NCBI GenBank assembly: GCA_004764695.1
Contig: SMSO01000033.1
Coordinates: 2,542,001-2,606,000, forward strand
Reading direction: 5' to 3'
From: Schizochytrium sp. TIO01
Taxonomy: Eukaryota > Protista > Bigyra: Labyrinthulomycetes
DNA: 64,000 nt
The notes beneath the pieces are model-generated. The model did not search any database. It saw only the letters and a program-made list of their open reading frames with translations, and was not told where the DNA came from. A program made the translations under genes and the position numbers. This document shows positions 33,248-56,636 of this stretch, piece by piece; position 1 is the stretch's first letter; every line of letters starts with the position of its first letter.

Positions 33248-36200
33248 CTACTCTAGCTCAAATTCAGCCCCAACAATATCTGGAGTTAGCAACGGCTCGA
33301 GTTTAGCTCTCAGAACGCTTGGAAGACTTCTGCCTTGTATATTTTCGCTCCAGTACATACGCAGACGCTCCGCACGAACCACTCGCCACGCCTCATGCAC
33401 TTGCTCTGGAGAGTCAGGATAATATAAGTCGACACTACGTCTTCTGCTGCATTTTCTTATATGAGTGTAGCAAGCTTGCTTGTTCTTGGAGCTGTATTCA
33501 AGACACCAAGCACAAAACCGATGCCCGCAGCTACCATTGCCACAGATCACAGCAGAGCATCCCTCAAATTCGTCAAAGCGAGCCTTACAATTTGGACAGC
33601 TCGTAATCAAGAGTTTTTCTTTCATGTGCTGCAAATGCATCTTTGCTTCTAAGCTCAGCCCGCCTTCTTCAAGAATCACTGCCATGCGCTTTTCAATCTC
33701 CTCTTCGACCCGAACTAAAGCATCGCTTTCCGCTTTCATCTGCGCGATCCGCAAAAGGTGTCTCAGAGCCCTTGGCGCAAGGCGCGCAATATCTTGGCCC
33801 ATGATTCTTCCATCGCATTTATCCTCCACGCATTTCATCGTTCCATCGGCACCCACAGTCACAGAGGCTTCTGGGTCCGTAGCAGCTTCTACTGAGCTTG
33901 CGATACAGTCTCGGCAAAGGAAATGTTCTCTCTCGCAGCACGTGCCCTCGGAAAGCGGGATGTCATCCAAGCATACAGGACACCTTACTAAAGGGTCTGC
34001 GGCAACCCCGAATGCCTCAAGCGCTTCAACGGCACTTGGACGATGCTCAGGATTTATCGCTTTGAGAGAGTTTATGAGCGACTGTATTGCAGATGTTCGC
34101 TCACGGGGATATAGCTTCTCTAGGACTACACCCACAGAGTACATATCCATTGCAGTTTCGAACCTGTCTACGGGCCCAGTCTGCAATTCAGGAGCAAGGT
34201 ACTGTGCCGTCGCCTGAAGAGATGTGTATGTTGCTGTGGAATCCGCTACTTTCATACCATCGAAATCCCCAAGCAGTGGGGTCTCGATACTCGTGAGGAA
34301 GATGTTCTCTGGCTTGATGTCGCAGTGTACGATGTTCAGAGCATGCATGTCAGCCACCCCAATGAGTAAGCCTGAGGCAAGTCGATTCCGCGTAGCATTG
34401 TCTGCGTTGGGGTGTTTTTTAATCCATTCTGCCAAGTTGCCTTGCTCGTAGAAGGGCATCACGATGCATCCGCGTGGTACTCCATGTACTTTACTAACAA
34501 AGACACCGATAATGCGGATTATATGTCGCGAAGCGACCTTGCCTAGATTCGCAGCTTGCATGTAGAAAGCCCTAATTTGACTCGGATGCCCGAGTTGAAA
34601 CTGCTTTAGAACGAGAGTTTTGCCAGCGCTATCTAGCACCTTCTGTACCGTCTTGCCACTCCTCGTAACCAGAAGCTCTCCAACAGGCTGGAAATCCGAA
34701 ATTTCTATGTTTGCTAGCCAGAGATCAGAGCAAGCCACCTCAAGGACACCATCTGCACTTACATGTACCTTTTCGAGCCATGCTTGGTCTTTCAGTAGTT
34801 CTGGGTAATGCTCCTGCGCGTGTTGCAGAGTTTCGGCAAGTTTATGACGAAATGTTTTGCTCAGCTCGATAGGGGTACCTTCAGAGAGAATAAGCTCTTG
34901 TTTTTTTATTCGACGCTCGAAGTACGCTTTATCTTCTTCCTCCAGGTTCTTCCCCTCGAGGTCTCTTTTGGCTCTCTTGATAATTTCCGTCGCATCTCGC
35001 GACCTGGCAAGTTTCTCGTATAGCTCTATAACACAAGAGACATTGGTTTCTTTCGAACTCAAAAGCACATAGTCGTATAACTCCGCAATGTCCTCCGGTG
35101 AAAGAATGATAGGTTCATCTACCTTGAAGTCTTGGGTTGACTTCTCCAAACCATCAAATACTGAGCTGATAGCGCATAGTACCTCTGTCACTGTGCCACG
35201 AAACGTATCCCCTTTCAGGTCCTCAAGCTCTTCCTGCAGAGCATTTTGAAGTTCAGAAAGCTCAGGCTTCAGTTTTGTGGACTTTTCAGGCTCCCTCATA
35301 GCAACCCTGAATGCGTCACCAAGTCCCAACTCACTCACTCGCAAAATGACTTTTTCCACCGCTTCTTCGCTTCGTTGATTAACGTTACTCTGATAACTAC
35401 TTTGGCTCGCCTTGTACTCTTTGACGCACTTGTCAGCCCGACCAAGCAACTCCTGGCAGTCTTTGAAGTCAGCCGCGCATGCACGTCCATCCAATGCTGC
35501 GCCACTTATGCTCAGACCCTGCAACAAACTGGCAAGCCTTTCCTTAAAGCCACGAACTTGAACCTCATTGCTTTCGTAGAACCCAGTCCGAACCCAAGGG
35601 TGCACATTTTGCACGAGTGAACGCAAGCGCGCTCTTTCATCGTTTCGCTCCGCAATGAGCTGAGATAAACCAGCCGGAGAGCTTTCACGAATCCGGGCTT
35701 GGCAAGATTCTAAACGGTCTTTGGAGTTCGTGATGTCACTAGAAGTCTGTTTCAACTTCAATTGAACAAAGTGGCCTTGAATGACTGGGCCTGCGAACTC
35801 CTCAAACAGTGCAATCGCGGTCTGCAGGGAGTCTTCTCTAGCCACACCACGGCCTGCCCGCGTGTGCGAGACCTCCTTGGCGAGCTGCACCACGTCAGCA
35901 AAGCTCACCCCACCCATGTCCGGTGGTTCTCTGAGGTATGGTTGGCGAAACGCAGTAACAGCAGATGCTCAAGTCAGGATTCCATTCGATAGATGCTTCA
36001 ACACAGCTCGTGCACCAGACATTTATTTCAATCACGACGGAGAGACTCAATGCCCCTACCATCAAAGAATCAAACTTACATAGCATCTTCTGAGCCCCTG
36101 GCCTCTGCACAAGGTTCGTTCGCCTCATCAATGCAGACACAGGAATCAGGGTCCGGGGCTGCAATATCCTCTCCAGGAGTACACACCTTTGCAAACAATT

Positions 36201-39200
36201 CTTCGGGGGTTATGAAGTCTCCAAACTCACACCTGTGTCAAGTCAATCGAATGTTCAATACGAGGTCTCGTGAGAACAACAATTCGTGAATTTCAAGACA
36301 GCCTTGCAGCTCCAGGACCGACATTGATGACACAGCCTAGGCAAACCTGACAGCTAGCTGCGAGCGACGACGGAACTTACCAGGTTTTCACAGAAGGGCA
36401 TGTTTTGTGCAGAGATTTAGCAATTGCCTTGGCGCCGTCGATGCCGATGTGATTGTGTTGGAGACTGTGTGGTCACCAATAAGCGATTGTAATGTCGCGA
36501 CATGTCAGTTCAGTGCGTTTGATTCTCGACGATATTGAGCCACAGCCATATACTGCACCACTCTCCTTTCCTTGTGTTCGATCTTGGGATTTGGCAAAAG
36601 GCCGCTTCGGTTGTTGCTCTTTACCATCGGTTCACCCATTTATTCCCTGCATTCCTTATGTCCGTAATCATTCAGGGCTCTTTCATTGACTGTTTTCTTT
36701 CTCGCTCTCTATTTCCTTTTTTATTTTTTTCCTCTCTCTCTCTCCAGTTTCGAATCTCAGCGCGCAGCTCTCTTTTTGCCCTCTTTCTGCTCTACAAACG
36801 TACGACAATCGAGTGAGGTTTTTGCATCCCTTCAGTGCTTTGGCGACTGCCTTTGCGCCCTCATCGCCAATGTTGTTCTGTGAAAGACTGTGTACGAGTA
36901 TTTTTCATTCGTTGTGCAATACAATTATTACGCGTCAGTCACTTGAGTGTTTCCAATACTCCAAACAAGCGCTCCCCCGCCACCACAGGAACCCAAACAG
37001 CGTTCTCAACGTCATGTTCTTTCTGTCTGTGCTGTATTTCCGTAATTCTTCTCTCCTCATTCAATGAAACGTTGCGCATTCTATTCACATGATAACTCAT
37101 CACCGTTGCTATCTTTTGCTCTGTTCCCGAAAGCGCTTCTTCAAGTTCTATCGCCCAATCTTGAACTTCATGTCCTCAATTCTCTGTCTTTGCAAGGTGA
37201 CTTTCCCGTTTTATCACCTTCACAACTCAGCGCAGCGCAAGTTTTCGATTCTACGAACGTACTACAATTCTGTCAGCTTCTCGCACCCCTCAAGAGCGTT
37301 GGCGACTGCCTTTGCGCCCTCAGAGCCAATGTTGTTCTCTGAAAGACTGTGTACGAGTATTTTCCATTCGTTGTGCAATACAATTATTACGCGTCAGTCA
37401 ATCAGTTAATCAGTCAGTGAGATCGTGAACTGCTTTCATGTCTGCGTCTCAAGTTCTTCTGCGAAGCAATACTTCTGCAACTTCACAACACTGATTCTCT
37501 ACATTCGCATTCTCTGCTCTGTCTGTTTTTGCATCATTCGTCCTCAGCATTCAAAATCCTACTCATCGCTTTTGACAGTTCTTTTTGAGTTTGTTTTCAC
37601 ATCGTTTCTTCTGTTCTTTCTTTCTTTCCAAACAAAGGAACTCTTCTGCAACACATATGATTTTCTCTCTTTGGTCTCTCTTCTTTCGTTCCGAGTCGAC
37701 CATTTCTCTTCTTTTTCTATTTCTTTTTCCTTTTCGCATCTCAAAGGCTGAAATGAAATACGAAACAGCAGACTTTTCCAAACGTACCCCAATGTAGCGA
37801 GGTCTTTGCATCCCTTCAGTGCTTTGGCGACTGCCTTTGCGCCCTCAGAGCCAATGTTGTTCTGTGAAAGACTGTGTACGAGTATTTTCCATTCGTTGTG
37901 CAATACAATCAATCTTACTCAGTCAATCGCTGTCCATCTGAATGCCTTCTTTCTTCTCGTGTCTTCAGAGAACTAAGAATGTCTCTCTCAGCGCCATTCT
38001 TCGTTGTCTCTGCAATATTCATCCGCACTTTCAAATTCACCACTTTCGTGGGAGTGTGATTTCTCAATTTATTTCTTTCCCCAAATAATCGTATTTTGCT
38101 TATTCTTCCTTGCAACTTTAATCTTTGAAAGAGTGTTCTTGAAAGATCATACGTGTTTGCTCTTTCTTTTGTGCGTCTCTTTTCTTACGTTCTCCCATTC
38201 TCTCTTTCCGAACCAAAACGCATCGATAGTATGATGGTACCATAACTACTGCGCAGTGGAGATTCAACACGCTCATAAAACATACCTCAATGTGGTGAGA
38301 TTATCACGACCTTTCAGTGCGTTTGCGACGGCCTTTATGCCCTCTTCGCCAACGTTGTTCCCCCAAAGCCTGTCATTGGTTGTTAGAAGAGAGTATTTTC
38401 AAAGTTAGTAAAAAGCTGCATTACTTCTCAAGTGTTCTTTTAACATCACAACTCCAATTGCAGAACTCTCTCTCTTTCTCTCTTTTCGCTGTGAGGAATC
38501 GTCGTTCTGAAGAGCCTTCCTTCTCTCGATGAGTACCAACATGTAAGCAATAAGTATATTGCTTCTGTACACTTTATTGTTGTTCTGTAAACTTTTACTC
38601 CGATTACACCTTCCTTTTTTTTATATTATTATTATTTTTTCATGCTTTTCAATTTAAAAATAAAACAAACAATTGGTACTGTTCTTTTCCGCTTTGAAAC
38701 AAGGCCCCATCACTACTAACTGCCAAGGTGGGTGGGTAATCTTTCAAACAGCTATTGTATAAACTTATATATCAATCAAACGTACCTCAAGTCAGTGAGA
38801 CTCTTGCATCCCTCCAGAGAGATTGCGATGGCCTTTGCGCCCTCTGTGCCGATTTTGTTGTTAAAGAGGCTGGTTTGTGCAACACAACAAATACGAGTCA
38901 GTCAGTCAACTGCTTTCATGTCTGCTTTCATCAAGTTCTTCTGCGAAGCAATACTCCTACAACTTCACAACACTGATTCTCTACATTTGCGTTCTCTGCT
39001 CTGTCTGTTTTCCTTCAGCATTCAAGTTCTATTCAATGTTTTTTACTTCTTCTTGAGTTTGATTCGTATCATTTGTTCGGTTCATTCTTTCATTCTTTCC
39101 AAAGGAAGGAACTCTTCTGCAACAAATACTTTCTCTCTTTGTGGCCCCTCTTATTTCTTTCCGAGTCGATCATTTAAAAAAAATTTTAGCATTCCAAAGG

Positions 39201-39498
39201 CTGAAATGAAGCACCGAATAGAGACTTTTCAAAACTTACTTCAATCTAGTGAGGTTCTTGCATCCCTTGAGTGCATCTGCGAGGGCCTGAGCCTGCACAG
39301 CGCATATGCTCTCGCAAGCCAGCCTATGTTTGTTGGAGATCAAGGTATGCGATTCTCAGTTCATTAGTTCTAAATCTTAGCTTTAAAATAAATTGCTCAA
39401 AGGCCATGCCTCGATCTTCTACCCCTCTCTCCAGCATGCACTTACCAGACCTCCGTCGTACCATTGGTGATTTCCCCAATACTCCGTGCAGTCGTCAT
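33248..39498 (-). CDS. LRR (7x RNI-like) / helical region / non-RD Ser/Thr protein kinase / RBR-like RING E3 ligase fusion, 1158 aa, 10 exons
   Basis: Exons 39498-39446, 39323-39240, 38869-38786, 38369-38286, 37871-37788, 37346-37263, 36887-36804, 36464-36381, 36232-36080, 35930-33248. All introns are GT-AG and phase 2; the total is 3477 nt with no internal stop. Kinase motifs VLKQ, HCDIKPEN, DFDG, YLAPE, DMYSVG; RING1 CPVC..C..EHFLCRDC..C....C; Rcat-like CPNC..FEGCSAVIC..CGHRFCAWC. Confidence 0.88.
36381..39323 (-). repeat. Array of seven 84-nt exons, each encoding one 28-aa leucine-rich repeat, spaced about 420-525 bp apart
   Basis: Exon translations: LACESICAVQAQALADALKGCKNLTRL, LFNNKIGTEGAKAIAISLEGCKSLTDL, LWGNNVGEEGIKAVANALKGRDNLTTL, LSQNNIGSEGAKAVAKALKGCKDLATL, LSENNIGSEGAKAVANALEGCEKLTEL, LSQNNIGDEGAKAVAKALKGCKNLTRL, LQHNHIGIDGAKAIAKSLHKTCPSVKT. 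Each is bounded by YAG and GTA(A/C/T)G. Confidence 0.93.
37425..39239. repeat. Dispersed duplicated intron block (about 37425-37787 and about 38905-39239)
   Basis: Shared colinear segments aactgctttcatgtctgc, caagttcttctgcgaagcaatact, caacttcacaacactgattctctacatt, aaggaactcttctgcaaca, ttccgagtcga, aaaggctgaaatgaa and gacttttc. Confidence 0.9.
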
Positions 39499-51802: not shown

Positions 51803-53722
51803 TTAGTTGCTGTCATTGTTGTTGTCATTGTTCGTTCCATTGAGATCCTTCGGCACGAAGAGCATGCTCTCGAGGAGCCGCTGGCGGACAATATCATGCA
51901 TGGTGGAGTGAGAAGGCGATAGCTGCTGTTGCTGGCGCTGGTGTTGGTGGTTGTTTTGTGAAGAACGGGGCTGAGAGCACATCAATGATGAAAAGAATGG
52001 AACATCAGAGACAGTCCTAGACTGGAGCGTTTCATGAGTAGGAAATGATGATACAGGGGTGTTGCTGTTGTTGCTGCTGCTGCTGCTGCCAGGAGGAAGC
52101 TGTGAGTTCAGTGATGCCAGGCTTCCAGACGAAAGATTTGAAGGTCGAGCAGACACCGCCGCAGCAACAGCGGCAGCAGCAGCGGCGGCGGCGGCTGCTG
52201 CTGCTGCTGCTGATGAATGGCGAGTCGCAGATCCTGCCGCGGATACGGAAGAAGGCGAAGAGATAGATGTAGAAACAAGAGGCGTCGCAGAGGCCATCTC
52301 TCCCAGAGATGATGAGCGACTGAGCATGCCTGCGGCCCCCACCAAAGGGGACCCCGCGGCATGGCTGTGGAATGGGTGTTGTGGTTGCAAAACATGTTGG
52401 TGCTTCGAAGCAGCAGATCCCGAGAGCCAGGGAGCATTCATTGATTGTGAGTGTAAGAAAGGTCCATGCTGAGGAGATGTTGTGCTACTGTTACAACTGC
52501 TATTACTCGCATCACTTGATGCCGAGTGCAAGAGAGGCGAGGATACAGACCTTGGAATAGAGGCGGAATCAGGGCCGGAGCGAACTCGGTTAACCTGAGT
52601 GCCATGTGCAATGCAATATAAGCTACGCCCTCGAGCACCTTTGGAGCAGTCTGGGTATTGGCATCGTCTCCCACCTCCATGCGCTGAACAGAATGGAGTG
52701 GCACCTTGAGCAGATTTTTCACAGGTATCCATTTGGCATCGTCTTCCTCCACCGTGTGATACACAATACCTAGATCCACTTCTGTAAAATTTAATGCACC
52801 CAGGAAACCTACAACGCTTGCCTCTAGGTTTCTTCGGAGACCCTTCACTTTCGTTGGTGACAGCTCCAGGGCTACTACCGCTGCCCGTGGCTCCATCGCT
52901 ATGTGCTATCGAAGAGGACCTGCTGCGCGGGGATACTGGCGGGTGCCCCAAGGTGTGTGCGCGCACCCCTGAAAATTTGGTAGCGTCCTTAGTGGATGAG
53001 GCGCTCTTGGAAGTACCAATGTCATTTGAAGGGTGACATTCGCCGAAGCTAGTGTTTTGGTTGTTGTTGTTGTTGCTGCTGCTGTTGAGGTTGTTTTGCC
53101 CACTGCTGCTACTGCTGCTGCCGCTGCTGTGAAATGTCTGCAGCGTCCTCAGTTTGTGAGTCTCCAGGTGTTGTTGCTGGTGCTGATAGTCGAGAGGGTT
53201 ATTCTCCTGCTTGAGGTAAAACTGTGCCGAGGCGGCGAAGTTCTGGCGAGAAGAGTTGGTGATACTGCTCTCCTGCTTGAAAGAAGAAGCTGCTGAGGCG
53301 CAGGGCTTTGATGAAGAGTTACTTTGTAGTGGTGAATGTGGGAACGAATTTGTGCTGTTTTCACATTGCGTGTTCTTATTGTTGGGGTTCATGGATGTGG
53401 CGGCGGCTGCGAGGTCCTCGAGCTTGAGACGTTTGAGCAGAGGCTGAGGGTTGGAGTCTACCACGATAGTCGTGGAGGCACTGCTATTGAGAACTTGGAA
53501 TGCAGGGAAGACCGCTGTGGGCTGAGTTGCAATGGAAGATCGCTTTTTTGATTTACTACCAGAGCGGTCTTTGAAGTCTGCACCGCGTCGTAGCTTGACA
53601 GCGTTTTCATTGTCCTCTTCTTCAGCGTCCATACTCTGGCAGGCTGTGAATGGTATGTATCGAGTGGAGAATGAGTCCCAGCAGCCACGACCAGCTTCAC
53701 GTGGCTTGCAGTCTAGCAACAT
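51803..53722 (-). CDS. WRKY19-like Cys/His zinc-finger repeat protein (putative transcription factor), low-complexity, about 639 aa
   Basis: Three tandem C-x4-C-x-K-x8-C-x2-H-G units (CRFPGCIKFYRSGSRYCVSHGGG, CQMDTCEKSAQGATPFCSAHGGG, CQYPDCSKGARGRSLYCIAHG) with poly-S/N/Q/A tracts. Start uncertain (ATG 53722 or 53632). Confidence 0.8.
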   Translation of the reverse strand: MLLDCKPREAGRGCWDSFSTRYIPFTACQSMDAEEEDNENAVKLRRGADFKDRSGSKSKKRSSIATQPTAVFPAFQVLNSSASTTIVVDSNPQPLLKRLKLEDLAAAATSMNPNNKNTQCENSTNSFPHSPLQSNSSSKPCASAASSFKQESSITNSSRQNFAASAQFYLKQENNPLDYQHQQQHLETHKLRTLQTFHSSGSSSSSSGQNNLNSSSNNNNNQNTSFGECHPSNDIGTSKSASSTKDATKFSGVRAHTLGHPPVSPRSRSSSIAHSDGATGSGSSPGAVTNESEGSPKKPRGKRCRFPGCIKFYRSGSRYCVSHGGGRRCQMDTCEKSAQGATPFCSAHGGGRRCQYPDCSKGARGRSLYCIAHGTQVNRVRSGPDSASIPRSVSSPLLHSASSDASNSSCNSSTTSPQHGPFLHSQSMNAPWLSGSAASKHQHVLQPQHPFHSHAAGSPLVGAAGMLSRSSSLGEMASATPLVSTSISSPSSVSAAGSATRHSSAAAAAAAAAAAAAAVAAAVSARPSNLSSGSLASLNSQLPPGSSSSSNNSNTPVSSFPTHETLQSRTVSDVPFFSSLMCSQPRSSQNNHQHQRQQQQLSPSHSTMHDIVRQRLLESMLFVPKDLNGTNNDNNNDSN

Positions 53723-56636
53723 GCCGTCTTGCGACTGTGCAAGTGTCTGGTTCTGTTCGAGGCTGCTCAGCGAGCCGTGCGATGCCGCAGGCTCAAGCAG
53801 CGGACGCAGTCGTGCAATTTCTGTCGTGCTCGTCCTGTTTGGGGGGTTCTGGTCTTTTCGTTGGCTGCGTATTGTTGGGTGGTGCAAATCAATTGAGAAA
53901 AACGTATCAGCTTGAAGGCAAAATCAGACACCAGTTCAATGCGCAAGTGGATGATGTCAAAGCCAAGCTTTAGTTTTCTGCTTTCACTGAAAGCGAAGAG
54001 AAGTGCGTCTATCACAGGATGAACCACAAAGACGAATCTGTTTCCTCAATTCCTGGCGTTTACTAGTAAATACTCTGTATATACTACAGTCCGTCTATAC
54101 GCAACACTATCAGCACAAGAATGGACCTCGCCGCAGATCCCTGTACGTTCTACTGCTCCAACGAGAGAGAAAGAACTGCACCTCCACGCTCTGGCAGCTC
54201 TGTCTCGAGCGCCCAGTTCTTAACCTCTCAGTCCGGAGAGAGCGGCAATTCTCGAGTTTCTTCGTCAATAGCAGTAACCTATTACAATGAGCAGCTTGAG
54301 CAGACAAAGAGAGAGAGAGCCTCCTGAGCCTATTTGCAGAGCCTTGCGACTCTGACGGAGCTGTCCGTGTGACAAGAAAAGCCAGGGAGCCAACCGGAGC
54401 CAGACCCGAGCGAGTTGTCGAATCTCAAGAAGACGGCGAAGAAGAAGAAGAAGTCGAGGTCGAAGAAGGAGGAGAGAAAAGAGGCAAAGAACTAAGAATG
54501 AGACGATGAGTCAATATCGAGAAAACAAAACAAAAAACAGAAAAACAGAGAAAGAGAGAAAGGCAATGAATGTGCGGCCAAGCCCGCGACTCTGTCACCC
54601 TCGCAGCGTCGAGATCGCTTGCAGGCGTTCCCAGCCTGATCGGTCCGTCTGTCGTAGGCCAGCAGGTCGCTCCTCGAGGTCAGCAGTCTGGCCTGAGCCG
54701 GCCAGCCAGCTTCTGGGCGTGCTCGAAGAGGGTTTGACCTGGTTGATTCTAGTTTGTTGATTGATTGATCGATCGATCGATCGATCGATTTTCTTTTTAT
54801 CATTTTTTTTTCTTGGCCTCTTTTCTTTTCTTCCATATGTTAGTTTTCTCACAATTTACCATTCTCAGCCCATTTTCATAAGAATATTTATTTTAAAAAT
54901 TATTCAAAGTATGTACTAGGTACCCAGGAAAGAAAACTTTAGTATAATTACAATTCTATTTTTAAAATTATAAAAAAAGGCACTTTGTTACGATTTGTTC
55001 TTACTAAAACAAAAAGCCTAATTCACCCACTCTTTCACTCGCGCTCTTTCTTATTCAAAACAACTAAACAAGAAAGACTGTGCCATGCTGAAAAGTGCTG
55101 CTCCCTTCAGCAGTACGTACCTGCATGTCTACCGCCACATCCACGTTCGCCCTCACTTAATTGTTTGTTTCATTTAAGATATATCAAAAATATTGGATAA
55201 ATACGGAGTTTAACGTCAAAAACCAGAGAAACTATGATTTTTTCAAAACATTAGTTTTTATCTTATAACAAAACAATTTTTTCAATACATTATTAAAATT
55301 AAAAAAGTCAATATGTATTTTTAAGTTGTAAAAAACAAATAAAAAACTTATGTTTTCTTCGAGACGCAGACAATTTCATTCTTTATTTAACTAAAAAAGA
55401 AAGAAAATACTATTTAAAAAAAAAAAAAGAAGAAAAAGAAAAAGAGAAAAGAGAAAAGGTAGATTTAGTTAGCAACGCATTTGTACATTTGAAGTACGAA
55501 GGGCTTTTCTATTCTTTCAAGTTTTCGTCGGTAGTTTCTTCTTCCCTGAAAGGCCTTTCGGGTGTTTGTTTGCTCTTCTTGGTCTTTCTTTCTGGAAGTC
55601 CTCACGAGTTCCTCCTCTCCGACAAACCTTGCAAAGGACCTCCTCCTCTCCCCTCATAAGCACGTGTCCACACCTCTCTTCGAGCCCTTCTCCCTTTCTC
55701 AGGCCCAGCTTTCGCCCTCTTTCCGCGCCTTCTTCGCTCCTCTGCTCTGCTCTGCGCGTCTCTCCGTTCTCTTCTTTCTCTTTCTGCCGTGAGAAAAGAT
55801 CTCTTTCTCTCTCCTCCTCTCTTTCCGAATATTTCTTAGTTTTAAAAGAAAAATGAAAATAACATCATATTTTCGTATATATTGTGGTTTTTACGCGCCG
55901 TAGTGAGGTGGCTACTGCAATCGCTAAGCCTCCCTTGCTAGCATTAGTCGGTTAGCAGTACCTATCAGGGTGGTAGTGAGAGGGTAGATAAGGCTACTGC
56001 TGCTTCTACCAGTTAGGTCACATTGTTTGTTATACTACGCAACTCATCTGAGGTCCCTAATTCGTCCACGAGTCATCGAAACTGAGAAAAGATGCGCTCG
56101 AAGATGGAGAAGAAGGAAAGTACCGCAGAGTCCTTGTTGGGTTTTTAATGAAGGTACTCGACTCTCAAAAGAAGAACAAGAGAGCGCCATCTTTTCTTTG
56201 CCTCAGTTCTGCTCGAAACCAGGAGTGCCCATACATATAATAATATTAGTTCTAGCTAGTAATACCAGTAGTAGTGCCATAATGCTGAATGGAAATTGTG
56301 AAAATTGTAATACCTATACCTACCCAGGAAATAGCAGCCATCTATGAGTAAGCAAAGCAATAACGGAGACAGACTTTGCTCTAAATAAACGTTGCGGAAA
56401 GAGAAGCTTCGCGCAAAGACCTGAGAATGATACTTCCCTTTCGACCCTTACGAACGAAATCCAAATCAAACGCTCTTTTCCTGGTTTATTTATTTGATGA
56501 ATTAGTATGTTGACAAAATTATCATAGGTAGTATGTTATTCTAAGATGGTTCGTTCGCCGTTGTGGGTTGAGACACCACCGCGTTTTACATGGTATGAGA
56601 TATATGGGCTCTGTGGATGTATGTATTTGTTTACAT

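Follow-up and report, generated by a model that had tools for sequence, protein, structure and literature searches.

A variable recognition domain is joined to an E3 ubiquitin ligase both in TRIM restriction factors and in the leucine-rich repeat (LRR) ligases of the IpaH/NEL type. TRIMs also have a helical region, and the LRR domain of IpaH selects the substrate and autoinhibits the ligase. Among the RBR E3 ligases (e.g., RNF216, ARIH1/HHARI, HOIL-1, parkin), phosphorylation activates parkin and RNF216. Non-RD kinases were reportedly associated with pattern-recognition receptors by Dardick and Ronald in 2006. In brown-algal ROCO genes, the shuffling of exons that each encode one LRR has been published (PMC3341825, PMC11378527). 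Here we describe a gene of the thraustochytrid Schizochytrium sp. TIO01 (assembly GCA_004764695.1, contig SMSO01000033.1), located at 33248-39498 on the minus strand of the window, i.e., of the whole 64,000-nt stretch analysed (positions 2,542,001 to 2,606,000 of the contig). Its predicted product combines LRRs, an all-alpha region, a protein-kinase domain and an RBR-like ligase module in a single chain.

The protein shares with RBR ligases the shape of RING1 and the Cys spacing of ARIH1 RING2, but the IBR/BRcat domain is replaced by ~70 helical residues, the His at position +2 is missing, and a kinase and a repeat sensor are fused in cis. With the LRR-ROCO proteins of Ectocarpus it has in common cytosolic stramenopile LRRs with one repeat per exon, symmetric phases, shuffling and a variable repeat number, and those proteins have been proposed as pathogen receptors; they possess, however, a ROC-COR GTPase and no RBR, whereas here a kinase and an RBR-like ligase are present and no Pfam nucleoside triphosphatase (NTPase) family is found. 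The likeness to TRIM and IpaH/NEL proteins is one of analogy. They differ in domain order and ligase chemistry: TRIMs carry an N-terminal canonical RING, NEL is an unrelated Cys ligase, and in our protein a kinase domain is inserted. LRRs and a kinase in one chain, or a non-RD loop, are also found in plant LRR receptor kinases, in non-RD kinases of the IRAK/Pelle type and in LRRK2; in contrast to them, our protein has LRRs of the RNI type and not of the plant-specific type, no visible transmembrane helix or signal peptide and no ROC-COR, and its nearest kinases are not of the IRAK or RLK type.

On balance, we favour the reading that this is one expressed gene, divergent and non-subtelomeric within a family that numbers at least 51 copies, and that its product would be a cytosolic receptor that binds a ligand with its LRR face and thereby gates an RBR-like E3 ligase. 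Judged from its sequences, the family looks like a group of undescribed recognition receptors, for which an immune or defence role is inferred. No paper describing this LRR-kinase-RBR-like architecture was found in the literature. An earlier note on this DNA had proposed a protist immune receptor of undescribed architecture that senses, phosphorylates and ubiquitinates. The architecture is upheld here, the defence role stays conjectural, kinase activity has become doubtful, and the ligase is RBR-like without being a canonical RBR. Beyond that note, the RNA joints, the internal position within a minor clade, the conversion tract shared with contig 35, the absent IBR, the Gln in helix alphaC and the distribution of the core with exchanged sensors are new.

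Gene structure and expression

The features of the gene are as follows; all lie on the minus strand.

39446..39498, minus: exon 1, 53 nt, with the ATG at 39498-39496 (gene model)
39240..39323, minus: exon 2, 84 nt, degenerate first LRR, N-terminal cap-like; no Pfam match by itself
38786..38869, minus: exon 3, 84 nt, RNI-type LRR; LRR_6 E 6.7e-4
38286..38369, minus: exon 4, 84 nt, RNI-type LRR; length-preserving joints in RNA-like contigs that have other letters at hypervariable codons
37788..37871, minus: exon 5, 84 nt, RNI-type LRR; LRR_6 E 0.003
37263..37346, minus: exon 6, 84 nt, RNI-type LRR; LRR_6 E 9.2e-4
36804..36887, minus: exon 7, 84 nt, RNI-type LRR; LRR_6 E 8.7e-5
36381..36464, minus: exon 8, 84 nt, terminal cap LRR (...AKSLHKTCPSV..), the last LRR exon in paralogues too; joint 36464/36804 in X1
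36080..36232, minus: exon 9, 153 nt, acidic Cys-rich linker; joints 36232/36381 (X1) and 36080/35930 (X6)
35930..33248, minus: exon 10, all-alpha region, kinase, RING1, linker, Rcat-like finger and tail (gene model)
34790..35930, minus: all-alpha region, ~380 aa, ending in a conserved YPELL motif; AlphaFold2 (AF2) model with helices only, predicted local distance difference test score (pLDDT) 81.5
33998..34705, minus: protein-kinase domain, non-RD (HCDIKPEN); Pfam Pkinase E 1.1e-25
33815..33982, minus: RBR-type RING1, C-x2-C-x11-C-x3-H-x2-C-x2-C-x24-C-x4-C; VIA-align and alignment of relatives
33599..33814, minus: helical linker without a Cys/His cluster; helices at model residues 94-157
33449..33598, minus: Rcat-like finger, CPxC-x9-C-x4-C-x4-C-x4-C-x2-C...H-x3-C, candidate catalytic Cys being the C of EGC; profile against ARIH1 RING2
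33248..33448, minus: helical tail at the C-terminus, with the stop codon at 33248-33250; pLDDT about 90 over model residues 224-269

Cut from the window by script, the ten exons joined to a frame of 3477 nt that encodes 1158 aa with a single terminal stop, and all nine introns started with GT and ended with AG (donors GTAAGT, GTACGT or GTATGT; acceptors CAG or TAG), so that the gene model of the earlier note was reproduced. Each of the seven 84-nt exons is entered in phase 2, and the phase is kept through all ten exons. Three codons before the start codon at 39498 stands a TGA in the same frame, and the 200 nt ahead of the start codon contain no further ATG. Transcribed sequence extends upstream of exon 1 to at least 39650 as a 5' untranslated region (contigs of X1 and X3 cover 39449/39496-39650). 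The body of exon 10 is an open reading frame (ORF) of 889 aa (33248-35917) that opens with an ATG of its own at 35917. Protein searches were run per exon or with this exon 10 product; the joined 1158 aa served for the checks of frame and hydropathy.

For transcript evidence, contigs were mapped over 5951 letters from three small assemblies (X1, X3 and X6), which were labelled as RNA by guess, and from a genome-size DNA run (X19). X19 covered exons and introns alike and gave no joints, whereas the depth of X1 was zero or near zero in several intron bins. X1 contained exact joints for intron 7 (36464/36804) and intron 8 (36232/36381, listed as 36230/36379 with a cut of +2). The joint of intron 9 (35930/36080), for which the earlier note had asked in particular, was found exactly in X6, and X1 had loose ends on both sides of it whose letters were those of the end of the opposite exon. 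Within the LRR array the joints keep the length, but 8-18 letters are swapped right at the exon edges; for example, 18 letters are replaced at 39449 -> 39308, with a net loss of 122 nt that equals the length of intron 1, and 11 letters at 38360 -> 38788. These contigs therefore probably originate, to judge by their letters, from paralogues or other strains, and they support the splice pattern but not this copy specifically.

Further support for the single chain, independent of these runs, comes from MMETSP0960, where a complete transcript product (cluster P0012) has 1240 aa and in which about a dozen LRR_6 repeats are followed by the helical region, kinase, RING1 and Rcat in the same order. 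We take MMETSP0960 to be Aurantiochytrium limacinum (taxid 87102); its header gives TAXON_ID 87120, a fungus in NCBI, presumably by an (unconfirmed) transposition of digits. In addition, all 27 paralogues with a placeable motif (27/27) have the same TCAG acceptor before the big exon, preceded by 84-nt LRR exons including the conserved cap exon. One could suppose that two genes have been merged here, the first with LRRs only and the second, for kinase and ligase, with its start at 35917, as that ATG does exist in this copy and opens the 889-aa ORF, and as no single contig spans the whole gene. This is highly improbable, given the 36080/35930 joint in X6 with the reciprocal loose ends in X1, the retention of the acceptor in paralogues of which most have no ATG where the big exon begins, the presence of both halves in the full-length MMETSP product and the phase that stays intact over ten exons. 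The chain of LRRs, helical region, kinase, RING1 and Rcat-like finger in the earlier note is thus supported by frame, RNA-like joints, paralogues and the MMETSP0960 product.

Two observations concern splicing within the array. In intron 7 (36435-36761), X1 has contigs at a depth of 5.8-8.6 beside the spliced joint at a depth of 14.3, which suggests intron retention or unspliced precursor. In a contig of X6, exon 5 is joined straight to exon 7 (36887/37788), with exactly 900 nt (intron 5, exon 6 and intron 6) skipped; the shorter side of this joint measures only 29 nt, and it may reflect exon skipping, one repeat fewer in that strain, or mis-assignment between near-identical exons. Coming from the run of another strain, the joint is ambiguous, and the cassette-exon use (alternative splicing) suggested in the earlier note stays conjectural. 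Two antisense ORFs, one of 245 aa inside exon 10 (33480-34217, plus strand) and one of 211 aa across LRR exons and introns (38732-39367, plus strand), were taken as chance frames.

LRR array, linker and all-alpha region

The repeats have a period of 28 aa (84 nt), and five of the seven LRR exons match Pfam LRR_6 singly (E 8.7e-5 to 0.037), which identifies them as RNI-type. The consensus of 47 exons is L-x-x-N-N-I-G-x-E-G-A-K-A-V-A-K-A-L-E-G-C-K-N-L-x-x-L. Tandem Repeats Finder (TRF) reported no tandem repeat in the array of this gene, the units being too diverged. The linker that follows (57 aa) contains 16 acidic and 2 basic residues and 5 Cys. By a crude measure, no transmembrane helix or signal peptide was seen (the best 19-aa Kyte-Doolittle window scored 1.39, and the N-terminus is not hydrophobic), in agreement with the cytosolic location proposed earlier.

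NACHT, NB-ARC, ROC or any other NTPase family of Pfam was found neither in the 889-aa product (E up to 1) nor in the exons, as the earlier note had stated, and the all-alpha region between LRRs and kinase gave no structural match to a P-loop fold. This region yielded no Pfam family and no usable match in the ESM Atlas. Foldseek returned only matches with E >= 0.03, among them ClyA-type toxins and designed bundles (TM 0.15-0.21, background for helical proteins), and a wide VIA-align comparison gave Z <= 8.2 on helical hairpins, which is likewise background. A pore-forming or death-fold identity was rejected as unsupported on these grounds. One guess is that the region serves spacing or oligomerisation.

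Paralogues and diversification of the LRR face

When the whole genome was searched in six frames with the 889-aa product, 51 full-length matches were obtained from 302 first-look candidates, 46 of them without internal stop; we therefore give the family size as a lower bound of at least 51 full-length paralogues. The copy on contig 35 is 95% identical to this one and a broken copy on contig 7 84%, while all others are 55-61% identical. Measured over the whole length, 46 of the copies listed share 56-61% of their residues with it. In a quick tree, the three are grouped with an SH-aLRT of 100 into a small clade, separate from a tight one with 25 copies, and a recent expansion is visible in 25 or more near-identical scaffolds. 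A degenerate pattern of the LRR scaffold matched 356 times in the genome and not once in a reversed control. The arrays adjoin the big exons with a period of ~420 nt, and 5, 7, 8, 11 and 20 units were counted beside different copies (lower bounds, as only pattern positions were counted). The repeat number is thus not fixed, and with at least 51 copies and arrays from 5 to at least 20 units, the conserved single-copy gene of invariant LRR number that the earlier note named as its alternative is not upheld.

In 47 core LRR exons, taken from this window and the flanks of paralogues, residue entropy is highest at repeat positions 2 (3.5 bits), 3 (2.7 bits), 25 (2.0 bits) and 26 (3.1 bits); it amounts to 1.3-1.6 bits at the fifth and eighth positions and to < 0.8 bits at all others. 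Variability is concentrated at the x positions of LxxLxLxxN, which in LRR structures line the concave sheet. Variable codons change at all three codon positions, whereas scaffold codons are near-identical even at third positions. Compared with the nearest paralogue, that on contig 35 (C35; its sequence was used from exon 6 on), 12 of 21 face codons differ, 10 of them with a change of residue, against a single one among 60 scaffold codons. A comparison of exons 5 and 7 within this gene shows 8 differing sites, of which none is silent. The ratio of non-synonymous to synonymous substitution rates (dN/dS) against the same paralogue is 0.27 for the helical region and 0.23 for the kinase, i.e., by sequence comparison the effector half is under purifying selection. 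The pattern at the face does not amount to a formal test of positive selection because gene conversion can mimic part of it.

Such conversion looks recent at the 3' end of the gene. Positions 33251-34250 are 99.8% identical to the contig 35 paralogue L002 (G000:C35:2426837-2427836), with dS = 0, while identity falls to 92-96% in the remainder of the gene and to just ~65% in the downstream flank. Judged from these identities, the last 1 kb looks like a conversion tract over the ligase module. The contig 35 copy was also considered as an allele or haplotig and rejected, as its flanks are only about 65% alike.

Polymorphic LRR faces could also read variants of conspecifics, as in allorecognition or in incompatibility at mating or fusion. 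The family is hypervariable and multi-copy with many members at chromosome ends, and contigs of different strains differ precisely at the variable codons. No partner ligand genes were seen, however, nothing here bears on cell fusion, and the present evidence fits the defence reading equally; we regard this self/non-self alternative as quite unlikely.

Chromosome ends of A. limacinum carry LORE-TEARS, units of 366-529 bp repeated 1.8-22.6 times, which were treated as spacers without GenBank similarity; LRRs or a kinase were never mentioned (10.1101/2023.06.15.545109). The LRR arrays of other family members, with their ~420-nt period near contig ends, resemble these units by published description, not by alignment; this copy is unlike them in being internal and in having units too diverged for TRF. 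In the same species, herpes-like viral elements have been reported (10.1101/2023.06.15.545109).

The RBR-like ligase module

The last 276 residues were modelled with AF2 at a mean pLDDT of 90.8 (43 aligned relatives), and nearly all top matches of the model in Foldseek were RBR ligases, with RNF216 first (E 6e-5), followed by ARIH1, ARIH2, HOIL-1, parkin, RNF144A and HOIP. In VIA-align, RING1 (model residues 28-118) superimposed on RNF216 RING1 with Z 11.0 and a root-mean-square deviation of 2.1 A over 84 residues; RING1 of HOIL-1, ARIH2, parkin and HOIP scored Z 7-8, and non-RBR RINGs < 5. The eight ligand positions of an RBR-type RING1 are conserved, with Cys residues invariant or nearly so in 42-43 relatives. 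The fourth zinc ligand is His here (~33925-33927) and in distant relatives, and Asp in 26 of 42 aligned sequences (column of paralogues L003-L030).

A profile of the second finger aligned with ARIH1 RING2 without gaps over 35 residues, and all seven Cys were matched, one of them at the catalytic position of ARIH1; E was only 0.004, the best single-domain score. The candidate catalytic Cys is present in 41 of 42 sequences, and the tail is kept up to the C-terminus in relatives. By model and alignment, the module consists of an RBR-type RING1, a linker of helices and a finger of the Rcat-like type; its catalysis is putative. As there is no IBR, it is RBR-like and not a canonical RBR. The RBR-like ligase of the earlier note is thus supported, with a RING1 (Z 11.0 to RNF216) and a probable Rcat-like finger (gapless alignment to ARIH1 RING2).

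Distribution of the kinase-ligase core

In a HMMER scan of 1.84 billion representatives, 80 proteins were found at E of 1e-30 or better, many of which span the kinase through Rcat with ~30% identity. The closest named relatives are from Hondaea fermentalgiana, where the kinase-RING1-Rcat core is preceded by ANK or by LRR and ANK domains. Elsewhere, the core is fused to a WD40 propeller (P0025, from ENA, 1297 aa), to ANK and LRR (P0041, derived from Logan) or to RanBP1 (P0040, 1907 aa, from the ichthyosporean Sphaeroforma arctica); it also occurs in the dinoflagellates Durusdinium and Polykrikos as well as in Euglena. By sequence, the core is an old unnamed module that combines with exchangeable domains at its N-terminus and is much older than the LRR family of thraustochytrids, and the thraustochytrid LRR branch is the one that is expanded and diversifying. 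The kinase-RING1-Rcat module is accordingly not specific to protist immunity.

These fusions to ANK, WD40, LRR or RanBP1 in distant protists are what a general adaptor design would produce, and the gene could then belong to a family of substrate-selecting E3 ligases for endogenous proteins, similar to F-box-LRR proteins, whose many copies stand for many own substrates or regulatory states. The location of this copy among housekeeping genes and the ordinary purifying selection on its effector half would fit as well. We consider this unlikely, as changes are confined almost entirely to face codons (12/21 vs 1/60, and the entropy values), the repeat number varies from 5 to at least 20, and at least 25 near-identical scaffolds have expanded recently, a pattern typical of receptors that track changing ligands and not of those with fixed endogenous substrates.

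Kinase domain and alternatives to phosphorylation

The non-RD kinase of the earlier note is confirmed by the HCD motif. Paralogues and distant relatives alike retain the Lys of strand beta3 (VLK), the Asp of HCD, the Asn of KPxN, the Asp of DFD and the APE motif. Among solved structures, the nearest kinases are 9gmp, GCN2/PKR, NEK1 and MK2, and not IRAK or RLK. PDB 9gmp_A ('Map kinase kinase-like protein'), the closest of them, shares the non-RD loop (HGD), the degenerate glycine loop and the PYY..GSL motif; no informative paper on this entry was found in the literature.

Several results weigh against a receptor that phosphorylates and then ubiquitinates. GxGxxG is missing from the kinase, the glycine-rich loop being degenerate (xSRGGKxV), and in an alignment to 9gmp a Gln that belongs to a conserved F-Y-R-Q motif takes the place of the Glu of helix alphaC in every relative other than the one from Euglena; with both absent, the kinase may not phosphorylate, and its activity is uncertain from sequence. 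In the ligase module, the IBR/BRcat between the two fingers is absent and ~70 helical residues without conserved Cys or His take its place in both alignment and model, and the His at +2 from the candidate catalytic Cys is missing, so that thioester catalysis is unproven. The Pfam matches to IBR_2 (0.0067) and IBR_1 (0.029) as well as those to RING models lie below the cut-offs. The canonical RING of RNF4 also resembles the second finger by sequence; a canonical second RING of this type was judged less likely, as the His that it requires is unconserved in distant relatives while two extra Cys, found only in Rcat, are conserved. The core with RanBP1 or other N-termini gives no sign of diversification in the lineages concerned, and it may thus be a general signalling device. 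As to expression, all runs consist of contigs with a guessed RNA label, none of which covers the whole gene, and the joints in the LRR array are probably not those of this copy.

The kinase fold could accordingly be that of a pseudokinase, in which case the protein would be an LRR-targeted E3 ligase only, with the fold acting as a rigid scaffold or as a nucleotide-sensing switch (as in MLKL or JH2). The degenerate glycine loop (xSRGGKxV) speaks for it, as do the alphaC Gln in thraustochytrid, dinoflagellate-like and Sphaeroforma relatives and the appearance of the TYK2 pseudokinase domain among the sequence matches. It is nevertheless somewhat unlikely in our view, because the beta3 Lys, the HCD Asp, the KPxN Asn, the DFD Asp and APE are kept even in distant relatives, and some of these catalytic residues are usually lost in pseudokinases. 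A pseudokinase alters the mechanism and leaves the recognition role as it is. Of the chain of sensing, phosphorylation and ubiquitination suggested earlier, the layout in a single chain is hence retained, and phosphorylation is doubtful (degenerate glycine loop; alphaC Gln throughout the family).

Proposed mechanism and significance

In the receptor reading that we favour, the variable LRR face would capture a protein ligand, either non-self (e.g., viral) or altered self, and its binding would lift an autoinhibited state. The RBR-like module would then be turned on by the kinase domain, which might autophosphorylate or serve as a scaffold under phospho-regulation, following the logic of PINK1 and parkin within one chain. 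RING1 would recruit E2~Ub, and ubiquitin would pass to the Cys of Rcat and be handed on from there, either to the bound ligand or to a substrate further downstream. The net effect would be that of a restriction factor or receptor E3 ligase without an NTPase switch. More tentatively, and as a possibility to which we give less credence than to the receptor itself, the family may represent a new NTPase-free class of innate immune receptors, in which an exon-modular hypervariable LRR sensor would catch a foreign protein and, by way of an atypical kinase in cis, directly gate an IBR-less RBR, and which would form the diversified branch of a pan-protist kinase-RBR module whose sensors (LRR, ANK or WD40) are exchangeable.

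If the receptor reading holds, a free-living marine protist defends itself, or discriminates, with dozens of receptors in which a diversifying LRR is coupled directly to ubiquitination. The NTPase switch that defines NLR and ROCO proteins would be dispensed with, which would add a new design to the few large recognition repertoires, and RBR ligases would be able to operate without an IBR and under a fused kinase. This copy is a useful object for study, as a single-locus, internal gene with only seven repeats and diverged introns allows unambiguous targeting and sequencing, unlike subtelomeric arrays. Aurantiochytrium is culturable and transformable.

Genomic neighbourhood

The gene lies ~2.57 Mb into contig 32, in an internal, non-subtelomeric position, next to genes for fucosyltransferase, Rab3GAP-like, SprT-like and bestrophin-like proteins. 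The earlier statement that the neighbours have no or one intron was checked only loosely; the neighbouring genes are long single ORFs, which agrees with it to that extent. A 694-aa ORF at 51806-53887 (minus strand) encodes zinc-finger repeats of the WRKY19 type (PF24906, E 1.1e-22), so that a domain named after plants is present in a stramenopile.

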